Below are positions 7,915 through 64,000 of a stretch of 64,000 nt of DNA, in pieces (position 1 is the first letter of the stretch; each line of letters starts with the position of its first letter). The DNA lies in NCBI RefSeq assembly GCF_028641065.1, contig NC_073392.1, forward strand, positions 24,800,001 to 24,864,000, in the 5' to 3' direction. The notes under the pieces are model-generated. The model did no database searches. It had not been told where the DNA came from and saw only the letters and a list, made by a program, of their open reading frames with translations. A program made the translations under genes and the position numbers. This DNA is from Leucoraja erinacea. Its lineage: Eukaryota.

Positions 7915-8110
7915 TCCTCCGTGCGCGCACACGCGCCAAGACCTCTCACCCCGCGCGCATCACGCACGCGGCCAACCAATGGCGGTCGACGGACGGCCCG
8001 ACCAATGGGAAGCGGCTTCGGCGGGGGCGCGTGCACGAGCGCCAGATCCCCGGGGATCTCCCATGCGCGCGCGCGCGCGCCATCCTTCAAACACTGCTGC
8101 ATCGCCGGCA
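7915..8110 (-). promoter_or_regulatory. CHCHD4 CpG-rich promoter (CCAAT boxes, GC boxes, NRF1-like GCGC motifs)
   Basis: CCAAT at ~7976 and ~8002, GGCGGGGGCG, (GC)8 at 8065-8080, dense CpG directly upstream of the ATG. Confidence 0.75.
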
Positions 8111-8679
8111 CAAAATATGCAGCGTGAATAAAAGAATGCAGAGCATGCTTCATGCTCGGAATTACAGCAAGTGTGAGCAGGCCATTCAGCCCCTTGTCTC
8201 CGTGCACACCCTCTGTCCTCACTCTCTCTCCCAGTCAATTCTCCCTCTTTGACAGACAGAAGTCAAGTGTTTAAAATGCACCAGGTATGAAATTCTTACT
8301 TGCTGCAGCTTAACAGGTCCGCAAACACAATAACACAAATTATGTGTGGGAAGGAACTGCACATGCTGGTTTAAACCGAAGATAAACACAAAAATCTGGA
8401 GTAACTCAGTGGGACAAGCAGCATTTCTGGAGAGAAGGAATGGGTGACGTTTCGGGTCGAGACCCTTCTTCGGATTACACACGGATGACTTTATCTTGCA
8501 CTAAACATTATTCCCTTATCATGTATCGATACACTGAGGATGGGTCGATAGTAATGTATAGTCTTTCCACTGACTAGATGTCACGCAACAAAAGCTTTTC
8601 ACTGTACCTCGCTACATGTGACAAAAAATTAAACTAAACTATACAAGAAAACAATAATCTAAAATAAAAGGTCATCACC

Positions 8680-9180
8680 TTTCTAAAAGTACATCCTTTT
8701 ATTCTGAGGCTATGACCTCTGGTCCTAGATTCTCCCACTAACGGAAACATCCTCTCCACATTCACTCTATGGAGGCCTCCCGCGATTCTGTAAGTTTCAA
8801 TTAGATCCTTCTAAACTCCAGCGAGTACAGGGCTAGTGCCAACAAACACTCGGCACAGGTTAACCCAATCATTCCTGGAATAATTCTTGTAAACCTCCTC
8901 TGGACCCTCTCTAACGCCGATACATCCTTCCTCAGATATGGGTCCCAAAACTGCTCACAATACTCCAAGTGCGGTCTGACCAGTGCCTTATAATGCCTCA
9001 TTCAGCATTACATCCCTATTTTTATATTCTGGTCCTCTTTAAATAAATGCTAGCATTGTATATGCCTTCCTTAATACTGATTTCCCTTGCAAATTATCTT
9101 GTTGGGAATCTGTACCAGCACTCACAAGCAAAGATCTTATAGTGGAGCTATAAGATCTTTGCTCACAAGTCCCTTTGCAG
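8680..9180 (-). mobile_element. CR1 LINE ORF2 3' fragment
   Basis: [41 protein letters not shown], typical CR1 RT C-terminus. Confidence 0.9.
9129..9161. mobile_element. 33-bp TIR-TIR remnant of P-like transposon with 8-bp TSD CTCACAAG
   Basis: ctcacaag|CAAAGATCTTATAG tggag CTATAAGATCTTTG|ctcacaag. Confidence 0.85.
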
Positions 9181-9719
9181 CAATGTTGTCCAGAGATGCT
9201 GTCTGACCTGCTGAGTTACCACAGCACTTTGTGACCTTTCAGTTTGTTAAATGTTAATGGTTTATTTTGGAAGACATAGAGGTAGACCATTATAGTCACA
9301 AAGTGCTGGAGTAACTCAGCGAGTCAGGCAACATCCCTGGAGAACGCGGATAGGTGACATTTCGGGTCGGGACCCTTCTTCAGACGATAGTATTATCTCA
9401 TTTAACTGTATAGCATGTAAACAAAAGTTTTCACTGTAACGCGTGACATTAATCATAAACCAAAATCCCCAAATACTTCAGTTAATATCTCCATATGAAG
9501 GGATCATAGCCTAAAAAAATAACTCTCTCCACTCTTGCTGAGAGTTTACATTTTCAGTGTTTATTTCAGATTTCCAACAGCTGTATTTGTATTTACTTTC
9601 TAATTACTTTCCTTGTATGGTTAATTTGTTACACTGTGTAATAAAATCAGCATTAGAGAATATCTTGACCTTTGTGCATTTAATATTGACAAAAGAAACT
9701 CTCAGCCTCCCTCCTGGCA

Positions 9720-9898
9720 ATGGACTTCCGGTTACTCCCCGTGTCCCGGGACTACAGCCCCCAGGATGCAGTGCGCTGCGGCTGGCCTTACGCATGCGTG
9801 GTAGTGCATCCAGTCCGAGGAGGCCGGTAGTTGGGGTCGGCTGGCGGGAGCAAAGATCCTCTATAATCTTTGGGCGGGAGGTCTGGGGCTGGGTGGCG
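9720..9898 (+). promoter_or_regulatory. TMEM43 promoter/5'UTR: ETS/GABP site, ZNF143 (SBS) site, NRF1-like site
   Basis: ACTTCCGGT 9724-9732; ACTACAGCCCCCAGGATGCA 9751-9770; ACGCATGCGT 9791-9800. Confidence 0.75.
9851..9872. mobile_element. 22-bp TIR-TIR remnant of P-like transposon with 8-bp TSD GGCGGGAG
   Basis: ggcgggag|CAAAGATCCT CTATAATCTTTG|ggcgggag. Confidence 0.8.
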
Positions 9899-9913
9899 AT
9901 GGCCAGACCACAG
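9899..9913 (+). CDS. TMEM43: TMEM43 exon 1 coding part (MARPQ)
   Basis: gcgATGG Kozak context; CAG|gttaga; phase 0 matches exon 2. Confidence 0.8.
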
Positions 9914-12900
9914 GTTAGACGGGCCGGGGTGGAGAGGTGGGCTGGGGATAAGGAATTGTTCCTTCCTTCCATAGTTAGTTAGTTAGTAAGTAAGGGAGGT
10001 GGGAGGGGGAAGAAGATGCGAGGGAAAGAGGACGGTGTGAGGCAGGGAGGGAGGGAGGGGGTGGTGGAGTGGGGGTCATGAGGTGGTTAATGAAGGGAGG
10101 GGGGGTTCTTGGTCCTCCAAAATATTCCAACTGGAATTTAAACTGGAGGTGGTGAAGGGAGGGCTTAAGCCAGAAAGGGTTATTGGGAAGAAAGAGCTAC
10201 TATAAATTTAGTTGCATCTGGTTGGGTAACTATAGTTGGGTGGAGATTATTCCATGCTTTAATTGTGCGGGGGGAAGAACGAATTGCTGTACACATCTGT
10301 CTTTGTAGCTGGGATCACAAATTGGATCGAATACCCTCGTCTGTTCCTAATTGGTTTGGGTTTGGTTTGGGGGTGGGGGCAGGATGAGGGGGCTGTGGAC
10401 TGTGTGAAGGAGGGATGACTGTGTGTGGGGAGGCTTGGTGGAGTTGGGAGAGGGGGTGATACAGTTGGGTATCGTCTGCGACTATTCTGACACAGCTAAT
10501 CCTGGCCAATCCCTCAGTTGTACGAAAAAAGCTCCCAGTGATTCCAGCCTTCCAATGACAGGGAGAAATTGCTTTCTAAAGATGTGTAGAAAGGAACTGC
10601 AGATGCTGGCTTATACCAAAGATAGACACAAAGTGCTGGAGTAACACAGCGGGTCAGGCAACATCTCTGGGGGAAAAAGGATAGGTGAGGTTTCAGATTG
10701 GGACCCTTCTTCAGACTGAAAGTAGAGGGCTGGGAACTGGAGGAAAGAAAAGGCCAGAATCCCTGCAATGTTCTGGCCTTTTCTAACCTCCGGTTCCCTT
10801 TCCTCTACGTTCAGTCTGAAGAAGGGACCCGACACAAAACGTTGCCCATCCATGTTCTCCAGAGATGCTGCCTGACCCGCTGAGTTTCTTCAGCACTTGC
10901 TTTCTATAATCGTTTGTGCTTTCATTTGTCTAGATGACTCGTGTTGAAGGTTTTGATTGCTGATGTGATTTATTTGAATCGTTCTCACCTTGCAGTTGGC
11001 AGAAGACATGGGCACGGATGAACATGTGAGGGTCACATCTCAGAAGAAACCAGGCTTCCTGGATCGTCTCGGCGAGACCACGGGGGGAATGCTGGTGGGA
11101 TTGGCAGCCTTCCTGCTCTCCTTCTACCTCCTCTTCACAAATGAAGTAAGAGTTTGGTTGAGGGCTAATCTCTAATCCATGTGCGGTGCTCTGTGTGGGG
11201 CACATTACAGTTCCTTGTGCTTATTCTACCCAAAGCAGAAAGTCCAGGAGTCGTCACCTCGAACGATGCCGAGAGTAGAGGGGATTTAAATCTCATACGC
11301 ACCAGGACTGGACCTGGGCAGTGTTCACCACTTTTGTAATCTACTTTGTTCCAGGGTGTTTGAGTTGACGAACCAGGCCCTGATGCAACCAGCCAATGTG
11401 CTCCACACCGTCTGTGTATCTTACCATCTCTTCACTTCTCATTTTATTTATTGTTGCCTGTATCATTAATGCACGTAGTTAAGGGGCCCCATATCTGAGG
11501 AAGGATATGGTGGCATTGGAAAGGGTCCAGAGGAGCTTTACGAGAATTATACCGGGGATGATTGGGTTAGCGTGTGAGGAGCATTTGTCGGCTCTGGGCC
11601 TGTATTCGCCGGAGTTTAAAAGGATGAGAGAGTTTCTCATTGCAATATTGAACAATGAGAGGCCTCGTGGATTGAATGTGGAGAGGATGTTTTCACTAGT
11701 GGGAGAATCTCAGACCAGAGGGTACAGCCTCAGAATAAAAGGATGTACCTTTAGAATGGAGATGAGGATTATTTTAGTAAGAGTGGGGAATTTAGGTAAA
11801 ATTGTAAATTGTCCCTAGCGTGTAGGATAGTGCTAGTATATTTGTACGCGTGATTCCTAGATGGCACGGACTCGGTGGTCCGAAGGGCCTGTTTCTGTGT
11901 TATTTCTAAAGTAATGTCTAAAGTCAAACAATTTTGATTTAATCTCCTGGTGTATCATGTCAACAAACAAATCTGTTGTCCATTTGGGAAGGGCTGGGCC
12001 ATTTATTGTGCTGAAGTAGCTATCTAAATGCAAGGACTTAGTGCTGGGTGCATGAGCTTTCTCTATTGCAGTGATGTCTTAGATGTGTCTGCTCTCCACA
12101 CAGGGAAGGTGTGTGCGGACACAGAAGTCCCTGGACGAGGGCCTCTCCCTCGTTGTCCACTTGAACGATATCTATAGCCCAACGCCGCTGAATGACGGGA
12201 AGCTGGTGCACTTGATTGGACCTCTCATGACGACACAGGTGAGTGGCCACCATTCTGTCCCCTGCGACTGATGGTTCGAATCCCAGACAGGATGGGGGTG
12301 GTATTCAGATAAGTGGAACAGATGCATGTTCCGAGGGCGTGTAGAGTAATGTAATGTTTGTCATGTCCCCCCTGGTTATCAGGGCTACACTGTTCTTATT
12401 CCTCAGGCATCTTCATGCCTGACCTCAACCTCTCACCCAAGTTCAACAGCCGCAGTCGAGACTCCAGTTGTGCCAGAGGCAAGTCTATCGACCTCTGAAC
12501 AGCCCACACTGATTCCTGGTTTAGTTCAGAGAAACAGCACAGCAACAGGCCCTTCGACCTACCGAGTCCATGCCGACCACCCTAGTTCACACTAGTTCTG
12601 TGTTATCCCACTTTCTCATCCATTCTCTACGCACTGGGTGTGTAGGAAGGAATTGCAGATAGACACAAAAAGCTGGAGCAACTCAGCGGGACAGGCAGCA
12701 ACCCTAGATAGGTATGGGTGATGTTTCTGGTCGAGGCCCTTCAGACTGAGAGTCGGAAGATGAAGACACCAAGATGAGGATGGTAAGGTGTGAAAAAAGG
12801 ACATCAAAGGAGATGGCGATCAAGGAAAATTTAGAATAGATCATTGTTGCCTTGGAGAAGTTGACAACGAAGCATGCAGAAAAAATTTAATCAGGCTGAC

Positions 12901-15498
12901 AGACTGGTCAGAGAACTGGGAAGAGGGAGGGAGGGAGAGAGAGAGAGAGAGAGAGAGGGGGGGAAAGCAAGGGTTACTTGAAATTAGAGAAGTCAATACT
13001 CAAACCGCTGGGGTGAAGCTGCCCAAGGCAACTCGGTGACCCCTGACTTTAATCGCTCCTGTCAGCGGTCATGCCGTAGGCTTTCTAAACTCTGGGCTCC
13101 GGTTATCCTTCCCTAATCCTCTCTCTTGCGCTCCTCGATTGAGATGTTCCTTAAAGCCCAGAGACACAAAGGACAGCAGATGCTGTAGCTAGTGTTATAG
13201 GCAACATCCCACTGAGTGGGATAGGCAACATCCCACAGGTCAGGACTCTTCTTCAGACTGGGTTTTTTAGATTAGATAAGTGTTAGTTCAGATAGGCATC
13301 CTTGTTGGCATGGACAAGGTGGGCCGAAGGGCCAGTTCTGTTGCTGTACTGCTTTATGTTGTTAAGGGCCTGTCCCACTTGCGCAACCTTTACAGGCTGT
13401 TGAAAATTCAGCGGTGACCAGAAAGACGCTACGACTCTTTGGAGACCTCTCACGACCATAGGAGACCTCTCACGACCATGCAGCCTAATCTGTTCACAGT
13501 TCCAGGTGCTGTGTAAATGCAGAGTGTTGTCACTCAGTGAATCTTGCTTTGTAGACTGTAATCCAAGTCGTTCCAGCAAGATGTCTTCCTGACGGCCGTT
13601 GTGTTTCTTTCTCCGCAGCCCCTTTACGATCCAAACTACGGCATCTCGCTCCACGTGGTGAAGCTGCAGCGGCGGGTCGAGATGTACCAGTGGGTGGAAT
13701 ATGGCGACTCGAGGTTGGTAGGTGGGGGAGGGGGCGATCGGTGACGGGTGGGGAGAGCGGGGGTGATGGGCGGGGTCTGTGACGCGAGGCTTCCACTGCA
13801 CCAGCTGGGGGTGCAGTGGGAGGGCAGGGGCGGGCTGATCAGTTTGAGTACTAAACGCATCGTTCATACTCCAGGCAGTCGTAGGGCACTCTCCACCCAA
13901 TCAGATGTGGTGACTTTGTGCGTGGGAAATCGTGTCACTAATCTGCGTGTCTTTGAAGGATTGATGTGGGCAAGACAGTATTTACGTGGACTTCACCAAG
14001 TGCTGTGCTAGAATGTAGAACAAAGATCAAAACTGCACAGCCTTCGGCCCATAATGTCAATATAAACTACTCATCTGCATTGTTTGATGTTCCTCAGAAG
14101 TTGTTCTTATTATTGCCACATGCATTAAGGTACAGCGAACAACTGTACTGCGTCCTATCCAGATAAAGACTTCAAGAGAGTTTATTGTCATGTGTCCCTG
14201 ATAGGACAACAACATTCTTGCTTTGCTTTAGCACACCAGAACATAGTAGTACCCATACATGAATATAATCATATCTATCTATCTAAAGGATCTATCTATA
14301 AGAACATAGAAAACAGCGTAGGAACATGCCCAGATCCCTCCCTCCAGCTTTACATTTCACTCCTCATCTGACACCCTTTTGTCTCTTTTTCATCTCCAGC
14401 CTTTGTCACTTACTTCACCCATCTGCCTAACACCCCTCACCTGTATCCACCTATCACTCACCAGCCTCTTTGTTTCCCCTCCCCACCTCATTAACAGCTT
14501 TCCTCCCCCACTACTCCATCAGCCTGAAGAAAGGCTCCAACCCGAAACGCCGTCTGTCCATTCCCTCCACAGATGCTGCCTGACCCGCTAAGTTCCCCCA
14601 GCACTTTGTGTTTAGCCCACACGCGAGTGGAAAAAGAAAGGAAACAGTACAGTTTAAAGTTAGAGCAGCAGGGAAAGTGCAGGTTTTAAAAAAAAGTGTA
14701 GGGGGGGGCGTGTAAGGTAGATTGGGTGATCGGGAATGCATCCTTAGCTTAAGATGTTTTGGTTTTATAACTTGGAGATCCCAGGTGAGAGCTGAGTTTT
14801 AATCACTCCAATTTTATCCTAGGGATTACGAAGAGAATGGTGAAAAGAAGACAGAGACCCGCTATTCGTACGGTAAGTCCCATTTTCTCTGGCTTATGGG
14901 ACGTGGGCAATGGCTGAAGGGCGAGAGCTGACTGACCGATGAGTGGGGTGGCTGTTTCAGAGGGCAGTTCAAGATCTGCCTTGAAGCTGTGGCCTGGAGT
15001 CACATACACTGGCCCTGGTTAGGAGACACAAGGCATTTACAGTGGCACAGTGGCGTTGCGGCAGAGCTGCTGCCTCACAGACCCAGTTTCAATCCTAACT
15101 ACGAGTGCTGTGTCTGTGGAGTTTGCACGTTCTCTCTGTGACCGCCTGGGTTTTCTACGGGTGCTCTGGATTCCTCCCACATCCAAAAGATGGGTAGGTA
15201 GGTCTGTAGGTTAATTGGCTTCTATCAATTGTCCCTCGAGTGTTGGATAGTGCTGGTATATGGGTGATTGCTGGCGGTGCAGACTTGGTGAGGCCCTGGT
15301 CTGGTGTCACGTACTTCAGGTGAGGATGGCAGATTTCTTCCCTGGGAGACATCAGCAAACCAGATGGATTTGCAAAACAATCGTGCAGTTTCATAATCAC
15401 CCCGTTTACTCCTCACCTCTAGCCTCTGTCACTATCTCCACCCATTACGGTATGAGCATTGAATCCTCTAATTTCGTAATACCCTCTCTAAACCTCCC

Positions 15499-36000: not shown

Positions 36001-39000
36001 ACCATCAGGAAGACGGTACAGGAGCCTGAAAACTGTGATCTCCGGGTTCAAGATATGGGCCAAACGCAAGCAGTTGGGATATCAACCTGGAAAGGGCGCA
36101 CAGAAGATTTACGAGGATGTGGCCGGGACTCAAGGGCCTCAGCTACAGGGAGAGGTTGGACAGGCTAGGACTCTACTCCTTGGAGCACAGAAGGATGAGG
36201 GGTGATCTCATAGAGGTTTTGCAAAATCGTGAGGGGAATAGATCGGGTAAACAAACAGTCTCTTGCCCAGAGTAGGGGAATCGAAAAGCAGAGAACATAG
36301 GTTTAAGGTGAGGAGGGAAAGATTTAATAGGAACCTGAGAGGTAACGTTTTTTATACAAAGGGTAGTGGGTGTATGGAACGAGCTGCTAGAGTAGGTAGT
36401 TGAGGCAGGTACTAACGCAACATTTAAGAAACGTTTAGACAAGTACGTGGATAGGAAAGGATTGGAGGGATATTGGCCCTCACAGGCAGGCGGGACTAGT
36501 GTAGATGGGATATGTTGGTCGTTGTGGACAGGTTGGGCTGAAGGGCCTGTTTCCAGGCTGTATGTCTCTGTGACTCCAAGTAAGAATCTGATTGTTCTGT
36601 TGCCGGTACACGTGACAATCAAACACTCGACGTTTCTTGAGGGATCAGCTGAGGTACACGAAGTGATTAACACCCTTGCTGTTCCTTGAAGCTGTTCCCC
36701 ACTCCCTGGCACCAAACCCCCAGTCAATGCCCAATGTCCACATTCACAGGACCATAGAGTCATACAGTGTGGAAACAGGCCCTTTGGCCCAAACTGCACA
36801 TGCCGACCAACATGGTTCTTAAAAGTTGCGATAGTGCCTGCCTCAACTACCTCCTCCGGTAGCCCGTTCTATACATCCACCACCCTCTGTGTAAAAAAAG
36901 TTACCCCTCAGGTTCCTATTAAATCTTTCCCTCCTCGTCTTAAACCTATGTTCTCTGCTTTTCGATTCCCCTACTCTGGGCAAGAGACTGTGTGTCCGAT
37001 CTATTCCCCTCACGATTTTGCAAAACCTCTATAAGATCACCCCTCACCCTTCTGCGCTCCAAGGAGTAGAGTCCTAGCCTGTCCGGCCTCTCCCTATAGC
37101 ACAGACCCTCGAGTCCTGGTAAATCTTCTCTGCACCCTTTCCTGCTTGACAACATCTTTCCTATAAAATGGTGCCCAAAACTGAACACAATACTCTAAAT
37201 GTGGCCTGACCAACGTTTTATATAACTGCAGCATGAAATCCCAATTTCTACACTCAATACCCTGACTGATGAAGGCCAATGTGCCAAAACCCTTCTTGAT
37301 CAACCTATCGACCTGTGGTGCCACTTTCAGGGAACTATGTACCTGGGGAACACAAAAATGCTGGAGAAACTCAGCGGGGCAGCAGCATCTATGGAGCAAA
37401 TGAAATAGGCAACGTTTCGGGCCGAAACCTTTCTCCAGCATTGTTGTGTACTTTCAATTTTTCAGCATCTGCAGTTCCTTCTTAAAAACTATGTACCTGC
37501 ACTCCTAGATCCCTCTGCTCTACACCACTCCCCATTGCTCTACCATTCTCCGTGTTAGTTCAAGAAGCTTTTGTTCCAAACCTTGTGGATGTCCACACGG
37601 AGTTGCCGGCTGAAACGGTTTATCGCTCGGCGCAGGTAGGACTCAAACTCAGCCTCCATCTTCTCTCTGTGGAGCGGGGAACAGGAGGTGAGCAGCCCAG
37701 AGCGTGGATTGGATTTAAAATTTGATTTATACAAGCAATGGATTGGATGGCTTGTAGATAGTACTTTCAAAAACTTCAACCACAAGAACCTTTTAAAACC
37801 TTGTCATTGTTGTGATGCAAGTTCCCACACACGGCAAAGCAGGGATTATCTGTTGACATCAGAGTGGTCGAAGTAAGCATCGCCCTCAGAAGCATCTTTA
37901 ACCAAGGCCTCCCACATTGCAGTGGTCCCTCAGCACCGCCCCTCCCTCAGTACCGTCCCTCTTCCCATGGCGCTCCCTAGTAACTCACGGACCTGCTCTT
38001 CCTCTCCTTGGCACGCAGTGGAGTTTCAATCTCAATCTCCAGTGGTTGCTCCGGGAGGGAGGGTTCTGGAAGTGGCGGAGGTTCTTCTGGATCCTCGAGC
38101 AGCTCTGTCAGGAGAGGATGAGGACATTAAAACTGGCACTGGCATTGTTGGCATCACTCACCCACCCACCCGGCAATACCCAGTAGCTTGAAATCAGGAG
38201 CATACGAGTAGGACACAGAGTGAAGCTCCCTCTACACCGTCCCATCACACACTCCCGGGATCAGACACATAGTGAAGATCCCCCCAGGATGAAAGTGAAG
38301 CTGAGTGAATGATTGGCCATGATTTGGTTGATAACTGAAGCAGGCACGAAGGGCCGAATGGCCTACAGCCACTCCCGTTAGGTGGGTATCAGCTGGGTGT
38401 TGTGTTTCACCGCTGGGCATTCCTCGCTGCCTGGCAACTCACCTTCCACCTCCTGCCACTCTTCTTCGCTTTCCTCCGTTGTATTCTCTGTCTCCTTCTC
38501 ATGGCCTGTCAAACTGGCATAGGGGAGATGTTAGACACACAGTGCCACAGTACAGAAACAGACCCTTCGGCCCAACATGTCTATGCTAAACTCGTTTGCT
38601 CCATATCTCTCTAACCTTTCTTATCCATGTACCCATCCAATTGTTATTTTACCTCCCGCAAACCACTTCCTTTGGCAGCTCAAAAGGACACAGAGTGCTG
38701 GAGTAACTCAGCAGCTCAGGCAGCATCTCCGGAGAACATGGATAGGTGACGTTTCAGGTTGAGACCCATCTTCTGGAAGCTCGTTCCATATACCCACTGC
38801 GACAAAAAATCCCTATTAAATATTTCCCCTCTCATCTTAAATCTATGCCCTATAGGTCTTGAATCCCGTAACCCGTATTACAACACTAATGGTTTGGGAA
38901 CGTGTTTCCTGTGATAGATAGAGTCATAGAGCAGAGAAACAGGCCCTTCGGCTCAACTTGTCTATAACGACCAAGATACTCCATCTATGGCAGTCCCACC

Positions 39001-44900: not shown

Positions 44901-47900
44901 GTGAGGGGGAGGGGGACACACATGGTGGAGGGACAGAGGCGTGATGGGGGGAGAGAGGGAGGATGACGGAGGGAGAGGGGAGAGGACGAGTAAGAGAGTG
45001 AGGGAAGGACGGTGGATGATGGGGGAGGGTGAGGAGTGGGTGGAGAGGGGTGAGGGTGATGAGAGTAGGGAGGGGGGGATAGAGGGGGTGTGTTAGTGAG
45101 GGAGGCCAGGGTGAGATAGAGGGTGGGGAGTGGGAGGCTGAAGAAGTGAGGGTTGAGTTTGATGGTGGGGAGGAGTGAGGGATAAGGGACAGGAGTGAAG
45201 GGGTGAGTAGGGGAAAGAGTGTGTGTGTGTATGGGGGGGGGGGGGAGTAAGGGATGTATGGGGGACTAAGAGGGGGGAGTATGGAGAAGGTGATGGGGGT
45301 GAGGACAAGTGGGAAGGGGGGGCAGGAAGATAGGAAGGTGGCCTGAAGACTGCAACAACCAGGTTCAGGAATAGCTACTTCCCCACAGCCAGCAGGCTAT
45401 TAAACCTGGCTCGGACAAAACTGATTATTAATAACCATTTTCTGTTATTTGCACTTTATCATTTTATTTATTCATGTGTGTATATATTTATATCATGGTA
45501 TATGGACACACTTATCTGTTTTGTAGTAAATGCCTACTATGTTCTGTGTGCTGAAGCAAAGCAAGAATTTCATTGTCCTATACAGGGACACATGACAATA
45601 AACTCACTTGAACTTGAGATAGGGAGGGGGTAAACTAGGGAAGGGGGAGGGGGAGGGAGGACCAGTAAGGAGGGAGTGGGTGAGTGTGAAGAGGGGGTGA
45701 GGTGAGCAGGAGGGGCTAAGGGGTGAGGCAGGGAGTGAGTGTGGGAGGGTGAGAGGTGTGATAGAGGTGAGGGAGGCTGGGGAGGGGGAATGGGGAAGGA
45801 GAGGAGGAAGGAGCGGGACAGAAGGGGGGGAGGGGGAGCGATGGGGCGATGAAGGCATGAGGATGGGTGTTGAGCGAGTTAGGAGACAAGGTGGGAGTGG
45901 GAGGAAGAGGTACCAGGCAAACTAACGTCGTCAAAGGCTGACAACCCAGGGACCTGATGTTAAGATCTATGATCTTAAGGAAATGGCTTCAGAGAGAGAA
46001 GGGCTGGTTTGTAATCTATTAAAATTCTTCAGGATCTGGAGAAATCTCAGAGATGGGAAAATCACAAGGGAAAAGTCTCTACTCAAGAGAGGAGACAAAC
46101 TGAGCGGGAGTTAAGCCAATTAACCCAATGACTGGAAAAGTAGTGGAATTCATTAAGAAAATAATGGGACATTCAGAAAGTGGTACGACATTGGAGAAGT
46201 CCGCATGATTTTATGAAAAGGGAATCGTGCAAACATCTTTATCCTATTACATCCTCGAAGAAATAGATTATTGATTAATATGTGTAACAAATGTTATGGG
46301 GAGCAGGCAGGTGAATGTGGCTGAGAGGAAAAGACAGATCAGACATTATTGAATGGCAGAGTAGACTTGATGGGCCAAATGGCAATAGACAATAGGTGCT
46401 GGAGTAGGCCATTCGGCCCTTCGAGCCAGCACCGCCATTCAATGTGATCATGGCTGATCATCCCCGTTCCTGCCTTCTCCCCATATCCCCTGACCCCACA
46501 ATATTTAAGAGCCCTATCTAGCTCTCTTGAAAGTATCCAGAGAACTGGCCTCCACCGCCCTCTGAGGCAGAGAATTCCACAGACTCACAACTCTCTGTGA
46601 GGAAAAAGCCTCCTCTTCTCCGTCTAAATGGTTTACCCCTTGTTCTTAAACTGTGGCCCCTGGTTCTGGTATCCCCCAACATCGGGAACATGTTTCCTGC
46701 CTCTAGCATGTCCAAACACTTAACAATCTTATATGTTTCAATAAGATACCCTCTCATCCTTCTAAACTCCATAGTGTACAAGCCCAGCCACTCCAATCTC
46801 TCAGCATATGACAGTCCCGCCATCCCAAGAATTAACCTCGTAAGCCTACGCTGCACTCCCTCAATAGCAAGAATGTTCTTCCTCAAATTAGGGGACCAAA
46901 ACTGCACACAATACTCCATGTGTGGTCTCACTAGGGCCCTGTACAACTGCAGAAGAACCTCTTTGCTCCTATACTCAACTCCTCTTGTTATGAAGGCCAA
47001 CATGCAATTCGCTTTCTTCACTGCCTGCTATACCTGCATGCTTACTTTCATAGACTGATGAACAAGGACCCCCAGATCCCGTTGTACTTTCCCTTTTCCC
47101 AACTTGACACCATTTAGATAGTAATCTGCCTTCCTGTTTTTGATACCAAATGGATAACACCACATTTATCCACATTAAACTTAATCTGCCATGCATCTGC
47201 CCACTCATCCAACCTGTCCAAGTCACCCTGCATTCTCATAGCATCCTCCTCCCAGTTCAAAAATGTGTCTAGAAATGGGATTTTGTGACCCAAGTCACCA
47301 AACTACATGAAATCTTCACATATTGTGTAAAATAAATTATATAAATCACCCCTGAAACTCGATATGAAGAAGACTTTTTTATTAAATTAGAGAAAACCCG
47401 GACAATTTTCGGGTAATTTTTAGTCCAATCAAAGCACGTTTAACATTGAGTTGTCTGCCAGTTGGCCAATCACGCGCTTTGTTTCAGGCTAGCACACAAA
47501 ATGGCTACGGGGGCTTCACAGATGCCTATTTTACTGGAGATTCAGATTTGTTGTTCTGTGGAATAAATGTCGTGGAAAGTTGCAGCAGGTAATTTTATTT
47601 AGTGGGAAAAGCATTAAAAAGGCTGAAGAAAGTGCTGCGAAGTGGATTAAAGTGCAAGAAAGCCTTGAAAGCAAAGTCCCTGCTGAGGTCCTGGAACACA
47701 AAGATTTAGACAGCCAGGGACCAACTATAACTAAAAGGTAAAATCTAAAGTCTGAATTTATGAAAATCTATCTGTGAAGCCCCCTTAGCCATTTTGTGTG
47801 CTAGCCTGAAACAAAGCGCGTGATTGGCCAACTGGCAGACAACTCAATGTTAAACGTGCTTTGATTGGACTAAAAATTACCCGAAAATTGTCCGGGTTTT

Positions 47901-62420: not shown

Positions 62421-62438
62421 GGCATTTGCAGTCTTGTG

Positions 62439-63978
62439 CAAAGATCCAAGATAGGCTACTCCTGCTAAATGCAATGGACTGACGTGTAGTACGCTATGGA
62501 GGGGATCATGGGCATTTTTCCACGCCCATTTTAGCAACCTGAGCCTACCTAACCCGACCCGACTCGCACTGTAATCAATGTTGCGGGGCAACAGTTTGTG
62601 TGGGTCAGATTCATAAATCTGTCAGTTCAAACTTCTTGTCAAGAATAAAATTTGATTCTGGTAATTGTCTTTTTTAATGTTTTTTAAATCATTTCTTTTT
62701 AAATGGCTCACAAGCAGTGTTTGAGTTGATTTTGTAGTAACCGGAACCGACCCGACTCGCAGGGTGATTGACAGGGGGGGACTTTTTGTGCGTGATTATA
62801 GGGTTAGATTCATAATTCTGTTAGTTCATAATTCTGTTGATTCTTGTTAAAGAATAAAATGTTTGTAAACACACATACATGAAAATTATATAAATGTATA
62901 TAACACACACAATTATATTTCTTCTAATCCAATAATGAACTTTATTTCAGACTAGACAAGGGACATTAAATAAGAAACATTGTAAATAAGAAACATTGTA
63001 AACCTCCCTGCAACTTCACACACACTAGGCCTTATCCCCCCCGGCACTCTCTCGCCTGCCCCCTTACTACAATGTCCCCCCTCCTATGCCCCTCTCCTCG
63101 CCGCCCCGGGCCCCGCACTCTCTCTCCTCGCTGCCCCGGACCCCGCACTCCTTTCTCCCCGCTCTCCTCTCCTCGCTGCCCCGGACCCCGCACTCCCTCT
63201 CCCCGCTGCCCCGGACCCCACACTCCCTCTCCCCGCTGCCCCGGACCCCGCCCTCCCTCTCCCCGCTCCCCCGGACCCCGCACTCTCTCTCCCCGCTGCC
63301 CCGGGCCCCGCACTCCTTCTACCCGCTTCCTCGCTGCCCCGCACCACGCACTCTCTCTCCCCGCTGCCCCGGGCCCCGCCCTCCTTCTCCCCGCTGCCCC
63401 GCACTCTCTCTCCCCGCTGCCCCGGACCCCGCCCTCCTTCTCCCCGCTGTCCCCCTCTCTCTCCCCCCTCCCCCGGCTCCGCACTCCCTCTCCCCGCTGC
63501 CCCGGACCCCACACTCCCTCTCCCCGCTGCCCCGCACACCCGCACTCTCTCTCCCCGCTGCCCCGCTCTCTCTCTCCCCGCTGCCCCCGGCCCCGCCCCC
63601 TCTCTCCCCGCAGCCCCGCGCCCCGCGCTCCCTCTCCCCGCTGCCCCGCACCCCGCACTCTCTCTCCCCGCTGCCCCGCACCCCGCACTCTCTCTCTCTC
63701 CCCGCTGCCCTGGACCCCGCACTCTCTCTCTCCCCGCTGCCCCGGACCCCGCACTCTCTCTCCCCGCTGCCCCGGGCCCCGCACTCCTTCTACCCGCTGC
63801 GGATCCAATCTTTGGCCGGAAGCAAGAAGGCGGGAGCAAGAAAGCGGAGCAAGATAGCGGACCAAGATGGCGGAGTCAGGTTGCTAAAATGTGTCCTATA
63901 ATCACCCATGAATCCGCCCATGAGCGTACCTCACGTTTGCGTGAGAGTAACCCATCTTGCTCCGCTATAGGATCTTTG
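62439..63978. mobile_element. Non-autonomous DNA transposon, P-element-like (1540 bp, 8-bp TSD GTCTTGTG)
   Basis: gtcttgtg|CAAAGATCC ... GGATCTTTG|gtcttgtg; perfect 16-bp subterminal inverted repeats at 62527-62542 and 63876-63891. Confidence 0.88.
63085..63800. repeat. GC-rich ~30-bp minisatellite (CCCCGCACTCCCTCTCCCCGCTGCCCCGGA) inside the P-like element
   Basis: More than 20 degenerate tandem copies; source of spurious repetitive ORFs. Confidence 0.93.
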
Positions 63979-64000
63979 GTCTTGTGTGTCTCCGTTGGAC

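Follow-up and report, generated by a model that had tools for sequence, protein, structure and literature searches.

Two transposon scars near the start of TMEM43 in the little skate and their possible origin by P-type staggered excision

A stretch of 64,000 nucleotides from the little skate, Leucoraja erinacea (contig NC_073392.1, positions 24,800,001 to 24,864,000 of the forward strand; hereafter the window, with coordinates counted from its first letter), contains two short inserts near the start of the gene TMEM43. Both are flanked by perfect duplications of the target site (TSDs), each of 8 bp, and are built only of the outer end sequence of one family of cut-and-paste transposons, whose single full copy in the window lies at 62439-63978. 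The two structures, designated scar 1 (9121-9169) and scar 2 (9843-9880), are real remnants of transposon insertions that have lost their interiors, with the breaks lying at the element ends, and are thus excision or deletion scars. The mechanism that fits both of them best is excision by a P-type transposase making staggered cuts, followed by end joining, an explanation which is judged to have slightly better than an even chance of being correct.

Anatomy of the scars

In scar 1, the left TSD copy (9121-9128) was read directly as CTCACAAG and is repeated perfectly by the right copy at 9162-9169 (CTCACAAG). The remnant enclosed between them (9129-9161) is 33 bp long and reads CAAAGATCTTATAG-TGGAG-CTATAAGATCTTTG, so that two perfect inverted arms of 14 nt each flank the TGGAG centre. 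An earlier examination of the same DNA, referred to here as the original prediction, had described this structure with its 8-bp TSD, 33-bp insert and TGGAG centre, and the letters are exactly as it claimed. It had also derived the two stubs from the family at 62439-63978 and had placed their junction at a GC microhomology. Both claims were borne out when the stubs were compared, without gaps, with the right end of the full element, which is intact. The left stub agrees with it over 20 nt apart from two C>T differences, and the right stub over 15 nt apart from one. These two stretches share 2 nt (20 + 15 - 33), namely the GC common to both stubs. The left stub measures 14-20 nt and the right one 13-15 nt, and on the excision model the insert may be parsed as 18-20 nt and 13-15 nt joined at the GC or, alternatively, as 17 nt + AG + 14 nt. 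End position 9 is T in both stubs of scar 1, whereas it is C in the full copy and in scar 2. Therefore, the source of scar 1 was a variant member of the family and not the copy at 62439-63978. The claim that removal of the insert and one TSD copy restores the surrounding CR1 fared less well. One paralogue of 63% identity (46756-47084) reaches 8 nt past the restored junction and lends it weak support, and a MAFFT alignment in which the insert was retained was uninformative.

Scar 2 was found when all CAAAGATC and GATCTTTG sites in the window were listed, and it is located 690 bp from scar 1. Its left TSD copy (9843-9850, 8 bp, GGCGGGAG) and right TSD copy (9873-9880, GGCGGGAG) enclose a remnant of 22 bp (9851-9872, CAAAGATCCTCTATAATCTTTG). 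Comparison with the family end allows two parses of this remnant. It may consist of a 10-nt left stub and a 12-nt right stub that lacks 2 nt, or of a 10-nt left stub, a 5-nt CTATA insert copied from the end, and a 7-nt right stub. The overlap at the junction is 0-2 nt, as compared with 2 nt in scar 1. The scars differ in length, junction and end variant, and the difference at end position 9 (T vs C) indicates that they come from different source copies. Since the end variants are not the same, scars 1 and 2 represent two independent insertions near the TMEM43 start.

Specificity within the window

The two scars stand out clearly against chance expectation. A 25-nt family end, with at most three mismatches allowed, had two matches in the window and none in any of 100 shuffled versions. 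A scan for perfect 8-mer direct repeats around inserts of 10-60 bp with 6-nt inverted termini also returned two matches, both belonging to this CAAAGATC family, as compared with a total of one over 20 shuffles. When the termini were relaxed to CARAG/CTYTG and up to two mismatches were permitted in the repeat (inserts of 10-80 bp), scars 1 and 2 were the only matches, and the number of matches in 50 shuffles averaged 0.1 and reached 2 at most. Extending the size range to 10-5000 bp with the pattern N8-CAAAG...CTTTG-N8 returned three matches, of 22, 33 and 1540 bp, and none in the offset control.

The family is therefore represented in the window by three members (22, 33 and 1540 bp), all of which have a perfect 8-bp TSD, duplications of 7-8 bp being characteristic of the P superfamily. 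As no member of 34 to 1539 bp is present in the window, the breakpoints cluster at the element ends. Random internal deletion would not give two remnants with breaks no more than 20 nt from both ends.

The full copy of the family

The only full member of the family in the window is a non-autonomous element of 1540 bp (62439-63978), which has no coding capacity and whose inverted ends are imperfect and measure about 110 bp. It is flanked by TSD copies at 62431-62438 (8 bp, GTCTTGTG) and 63979-63986 (GTCTTGTG). Its right end, read inward, is CAAAGATCCTATAGCGGAGCAAGAT..., and its left end (62439-62470) lacks 11 nt, corresponding to end positions 10-20, relative to the right end. These 11 nt span the position at which a P-type enzyme would be expected to cut the non-transferred strand, and the loss could, speculatively, be a repair scar of one-ended cleavage.

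Four tandem 13-mers resembling AGCAAGAAAGCGG are located on the plus strand at 63821-63875. A related unit, in the opposite orientation, occurs within the terminal repeat. The degenerate motif has four occurrences in the window, all of them in this array, and the 13-mers are candidate transposase-binding repeats. The interior is taken up by a minisatellite of about 700 bp (63092-63800), composed of approximately 23 copies of a 30-bp C-rich unit, which yields spurious open reading frames of 250-277 codons on both strands. A Pfam search of four long open reading frames of the element, which run through the minisatellite, returned no family, and six-frame inspection of the inverted ends did not reveal any THAP-like exon. 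An outward reading of 'SCSAIGS' in the arms was considered and taken as chance. Outside the window, a metagenome scan with the family end sequence gave no matches, and the sole match of the 14-nt family end in the literature searched was an unrelated primer.

The sites in other skates

The original prediction had proposed that full or empty alleles be looked for in relatives. Contigs from sequencing runs of four organisms were compared over 8000-11000, a region for which few pieces were listed owing to its richness in repeats. Contig depth was extreme in all four runs at 8200-9400 and 10100-10900 (up to 10^7 in summed word depth), which marks very abundant short repeats common to these skates. 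Scar 1 was found in a contig of organism B (8971-9212) and in a contig of organism D (8988-9153), in both cases with 0 gaps. It is thus common to relatives, and presumably fixed. The picture at scar 2 is less uniform. In organism D (run X16), a contig over 9359-9906 aligned with 24 gap letters, and about 13 inserted letters could not be placed. Because 24 gap letters are fewer than the 30 expected of an empty site, the insert is not wholly absent in this organism. In organism B (run X3), the contigs end at 9838 and resume exactly at 9873, the first position of the right TSD, with 42 unaligned letters. None of the pieces listed for organisms C and E covers either scar. The scar 2 locus may differ between relatives.

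A second line of evidence comes from the TMEM43 proteins. The gene was handled exon by exon, with no joined-exon model, and was reached from an open segment with one exon through sturgeon TMEM43 and a sawfish protein to a cluster of skate proteins. A tblastn search of the window with the Leucoraja erinacea TMEM43 protein P0200 gave 100% identity in four exon-sized pieces and 88-98% where the pieces overran exon borders; the TMEM43 proteins of Amblyraja radiata and Rhinoraja longicauda had lower scores than P0200. A reading frame from an ATG at 9794 passes through scar 2 (region 9794-9916), and the scar together with one TSD copy amounts to 30 nt, that is, to ten in-frame codons (QRSSIIFGRE) in an N-terminal extension of a TMEM43 isoform. 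Used as a protein query, the open reading frame across the scar shared common words with 36 candidates, none of which scored.

Eleven of the 13 members of the skate cluster were read (P0199 and P0201 were left out), and four of the eleven cover the scar 2 site. The transcript-derived skate proteins P0206 and P0207, from Logan assemblies, both carry the identical ten residues QRSSIIFGRE, and each differs from P0200 by three residues. P0200, which is the RefSeq isoform X1 of the little skate, and P0156, from Rhinoraja longicauda of the family Arhynchobatidae (a record flagged as low quality), lack exactly these ten residues. The outgroup R. longicauda thus shows, at the protein level, the site in its ancestral, empty state, with one repeat copy. 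P0156 and P0200 are short of exactly the 30 nt formed by the scar and one TSD copy, whereas P0206 and P0207 contain them, and scar 2 is therefore genuinely derived from an insertion. Splicing of a micro-intron at scar 2 is an unlikely explanation for the shorter proteins: nine equivalent removals of 30 nt give the P0200 peptide, and none of the nine has GT-AG, GC-AG or AT-AC ends. The little skate data may hold both states of the site, which could mean that the site is polymorphic for presence or absence, that the insert was later lost precisely between the 8-bp repeats, or that the gene model contains an artefact. Of the two kinds of allele looked for in relatives, the empty one was found at scar 2 (P0156 and P0200), and the full element was found at neither site. 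The second scar and the empty site in other skate data strengthen the reading that elements were inserted and that their interiors were then lost.

Staggered excision and its alternatives

The loss of the interiors is inferred to have occurred by transposase excision, with a staggered cut made by an enzyme of the P/THAP9 type. Two copies of a CAAAGATC-ended, 8-bp-TSD cut-and-paste family would, in an ancestral skate, have inserted independently into TMEM43's promoter-proximal region, and each would later have been cut out in the germ line. As with the P-element transposase, cleavage of the transferred strand would have fallen on the boundary of the element, and that of the other strand at a depth of about 17 nt within the terminal repeat. 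Because of this staggered cut inside the repeat, each flank would have kept a single-stranded tail of end sequence. Trimming and joining of the tails by end joining would then have left 7-20 nt of each end between two intact TSD copies. Against the limit of 17 nt that a P-type cut would set, the stubs measure about 10 and 7-12 nt in scar 2, no more than 15 nt on the right side of scar 1 and 20 nt on its left side. The location of both insertions near the TMEM43 start fits a promoter-proximal target preference, which is not specific to P elements.

Several observations weigh against an excision of the P type. The left stub of scar 1, with its 20 nt, needs either an insertion of 2-3 nt that copies the end by chance or a stagger exceeding 17 nt. 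The family termini, CAAAGATCC, have only CA in common with those of Drosophila P (CATGATG...) and zebrafish Pdre2 (CATACC...), resemblance of the termini being a guide and not a strict defining feature of the superfamily. The hAT elements have termini with the consensus YARNG, a target pattern of nTnnnnAn and short subterminal repeats; the CAAAG termini of the skate family fit this consensus, and its three TSDs fit the target pattern at four of six key positions. No coding partner for these ends occurs within the window, where the only full copy is non-coding, and an allele with the full element was seen neither at the scar 1 nor at the scar 2 site among the read contigs or, for scar 2, among the TMEM43 proteins. 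The excision argument is, moreover, drawn from two scars only. Finally, the available text on zebrafish THAP9 excision assays reports larger flank deletions and not neat end stubs (PMC10983969).

The points that concern hAT lead to the most serious rival, which is nevertheless considered unlikely. It assumes a hAT-like or another boundary-cutting family whose remnants were produced by host repair, be it abortive sister-chromatid gap repair with very short tracts, processing of hairpins or cruciforms formed by the approximately 110-bp ends with subsequent end joining, or slippage of replication across such a hairpin. The 8-bp TSD and the CAAAG termini agree with a hAT origin, as does, in part, the target-site pattern, and the formation of internally deleted copies is common to P-like and non-P families, according to the available part of PMC7776569. 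The long inverted ends of the full copy could fold back, and the 20 nt of the left stub of scar 1 exceed the 17 nt that a P-type cut would leave. However, both remnants keep no more than 20 nt per side, and no intermediate sizes occur in the window. Repair synthesis would have had to stop within tracts of less than 20 nt on both sides, and to do so twice, which is not known from gap repair in Drosophila. For slippage, a microhomology of 0-2 nt is weak; the junctions have no direct repeat of several nucleotides, and slippage would favour the 8-bp TSDs and so result in precise loss.

The scar anatomy, which demands a break inside the ends, together with termini unlike known P ends, would also suit an uncharacterised superfamily with 8-bp TSDs (Zisupton, Novosib or Merlin-like) that has a deep cut of its own inside the terminal repeat, independent of P; positive evidence for it is absent, and it is regarded as improbable. 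Still less credible is the view that the 22-33 bp palindromes are mobile micro-elements that make their own TSDs, and that a larger element was never present at these sites. The window's two small inserts are unlike in length, in junction and in end variant and are thus not copies of one element. Both lack the subterminal repeats of the family, and 22 bp would be too short to pair two ends in a transposase complex. It does agree with this view that only the empty and the scar states, and never the full element, have been seen at scar 2. Chance resemblance or an assembly artefact has a negligible probability. It is refuted by the shuffles of the 25-nt end and of the 8-mer scan, by the presence of scar 1 in contigs from independent runs of other organisms, and by the presence of scar 2 in transcript-derived proteins.

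Biological implications

If a P-type enzyme made the skate scars, the 17-nt stagger is conserved in vertebrates, and the scars would be the first in vivo evidence of how a vertebrate P-type transposase places its cuts. Work on the vertebrate relatives of P (THAP9 and zebrafish Pdre) has so far been confined to cell assays, and no description of P-type elements or their excision scars in sharks or skates was found in the literature searched. P-type elements would then have moved in and out of the germ lines of cartilaginous fishes, and the simple sequence signature of the scars would make excision events countable and datable genome-wide. The finding would gain in interest if the coding partner were of the THAP9 type. 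Scar 2, which adds ten codons to the N-terminal extension of TMEM43, illustrates how the coming and going of transposons leaves small insertions permanently behind in promoters and in coding sequence. According to a broader proposal, skates had a germ-line-mobile P/THAP9-type family with an inside cut of about 17 nt, and their genome is an archive of fixed vertebrate P-type excision scars that are concentrated near promoters, one of which adds ten TMEM43 codons and is maybe polymorphic in the little skate. The chances that this proposal is right or wrong are considered to be equal.

Further repeats in the window

A control scan for scars of other families with 8-bp TSDs examined 13,209 repeat pairs and returned five matches, two of which are scars 1 and 2. 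Two more were rejected as their 'duplication' is palindromic and probably forms part of an inverted repeat, and one further match looks like chance, which leaves no other family to serve as a control. Elements with perfect inverted ends of at least 20 nt and a palindromic 8-mer, which is probably part of the repeat, lie at 36218-37024 and 47462-47831, with interiors of 791 and 354 bp, respectively. At 13197-13245, within SINE-like (short interspersed nuclear element-like) sequence of a TMEM43 intron, the copies of a 15-nt direct repeat (TAGGCAACATCCCAC) stand on either side of a 9-nt spacer that includes its own reverse complement, and this structure looks like a small snap-back duplication.

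Relation to known transposition systems

The skate family resembles the hAT elements Ac, Hermes and Tol2 in its 8-bp TSD, in its CAAAG termini and in having short subterminal repeats. With the hAT target pattern, the agreement at the three insertion sites is partial, with two of two key positions in CTCACAAG and one of two in each of GGCGGGAG and GTCTTGTG. The course of excision is where the likeness ends. In hAT-type excision, hairpins are formed on the flanking DNA, and altered duplications remain, with normally no element end sequence left behind; Transib elements and V(D)J-like routes likewise form hairpins on the flanks and are not known to leave end sequence. Both skate scars, in contrast, consist of end sequence, and for a hAT origin a repair-based route of its own would have to be assumed. 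Nearly precise excision of Tn10 is a bacterial process that is independent of transposase and relies on long direct repeats within the ends. The skate scars share with it a short donor-site remnant of the two inverted ends, but the homology at their junctions is only 0-2 nt. The transposition of MULE elements is described, in the available text of PMC5499845, as resembling that of hAT, Transib and V(D)J recombination. In a survey of 94 excisions in rice, the available part of the report lists duplication-only footprints, flank deletions and filler, and end stubs are not described in it (PMC4423477).

Among members of the P superfamily, Galileo and others with long ends have long, internally repetitive inverted ends whose repeated short motifs bind the THAP domain (PMC3688188). 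The skate ends are similarly organised, but they are only about 110 bp long and imperfect, and binding of a THAP domain to their motifs is putative. Zebrafish Pdre2 and its transposase zfTHAP9 provide a vertebrate P-type transposon with 8-bp TSDs and internally deleted copies, the transposase of which is active in excision assays, as stated in the available text of PMC10983969. According to the same source, Pdre2 has 13-bp ends (CATACCTGTCAAC) and distant 12-bp subterminal repeats, in which it is unlike the skate family, and the available text describes no natural excision scars.

The closest parallel is found in Drosophila. The P-element transposase duplicates 8 bp of the target and staggers its cuts by 17 nt within the terminal repeat (PMC7776569, PMC10983969), and in the papers cited here, as far as their available text extends, it is the characterised eukaryotic cut-and-paste enzyme that combines these two properties. 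In germ-line repair of P{wa}, the junctions described in the available part of PMC2895639 have a TSD copy on either side and between them at most 17 nt from each end, which meet at a microhomology of 1-3 nt, in a blunt join or across a few bases copied from nearby. Both skate scars agree with these footprints in their intact 8-bp TSDs, in the retention of outer end bases only and in a total length of about 20-35 bp. The stub lengths, the microhomology of 0-2 nt and the possible insertion of 2-5 nt copying the nearby end likewise correspond to the junction classes of that text (PMC2895639). The skate family is unlike Drosophila P in its end, which begins with CAAAGATC... instead of CATGATG..., and in one stub of 20 nt as compared with a maximum of 17 nt. 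Moreover, the P{wa} junctions were obtained in laboratory crosses, whereas the skate scars arose in a vertebrate germ line and are presumably fixed and shared between species. Scars 1 and 2 add a further example to a known kind of event and do not represent a system of a new kind.
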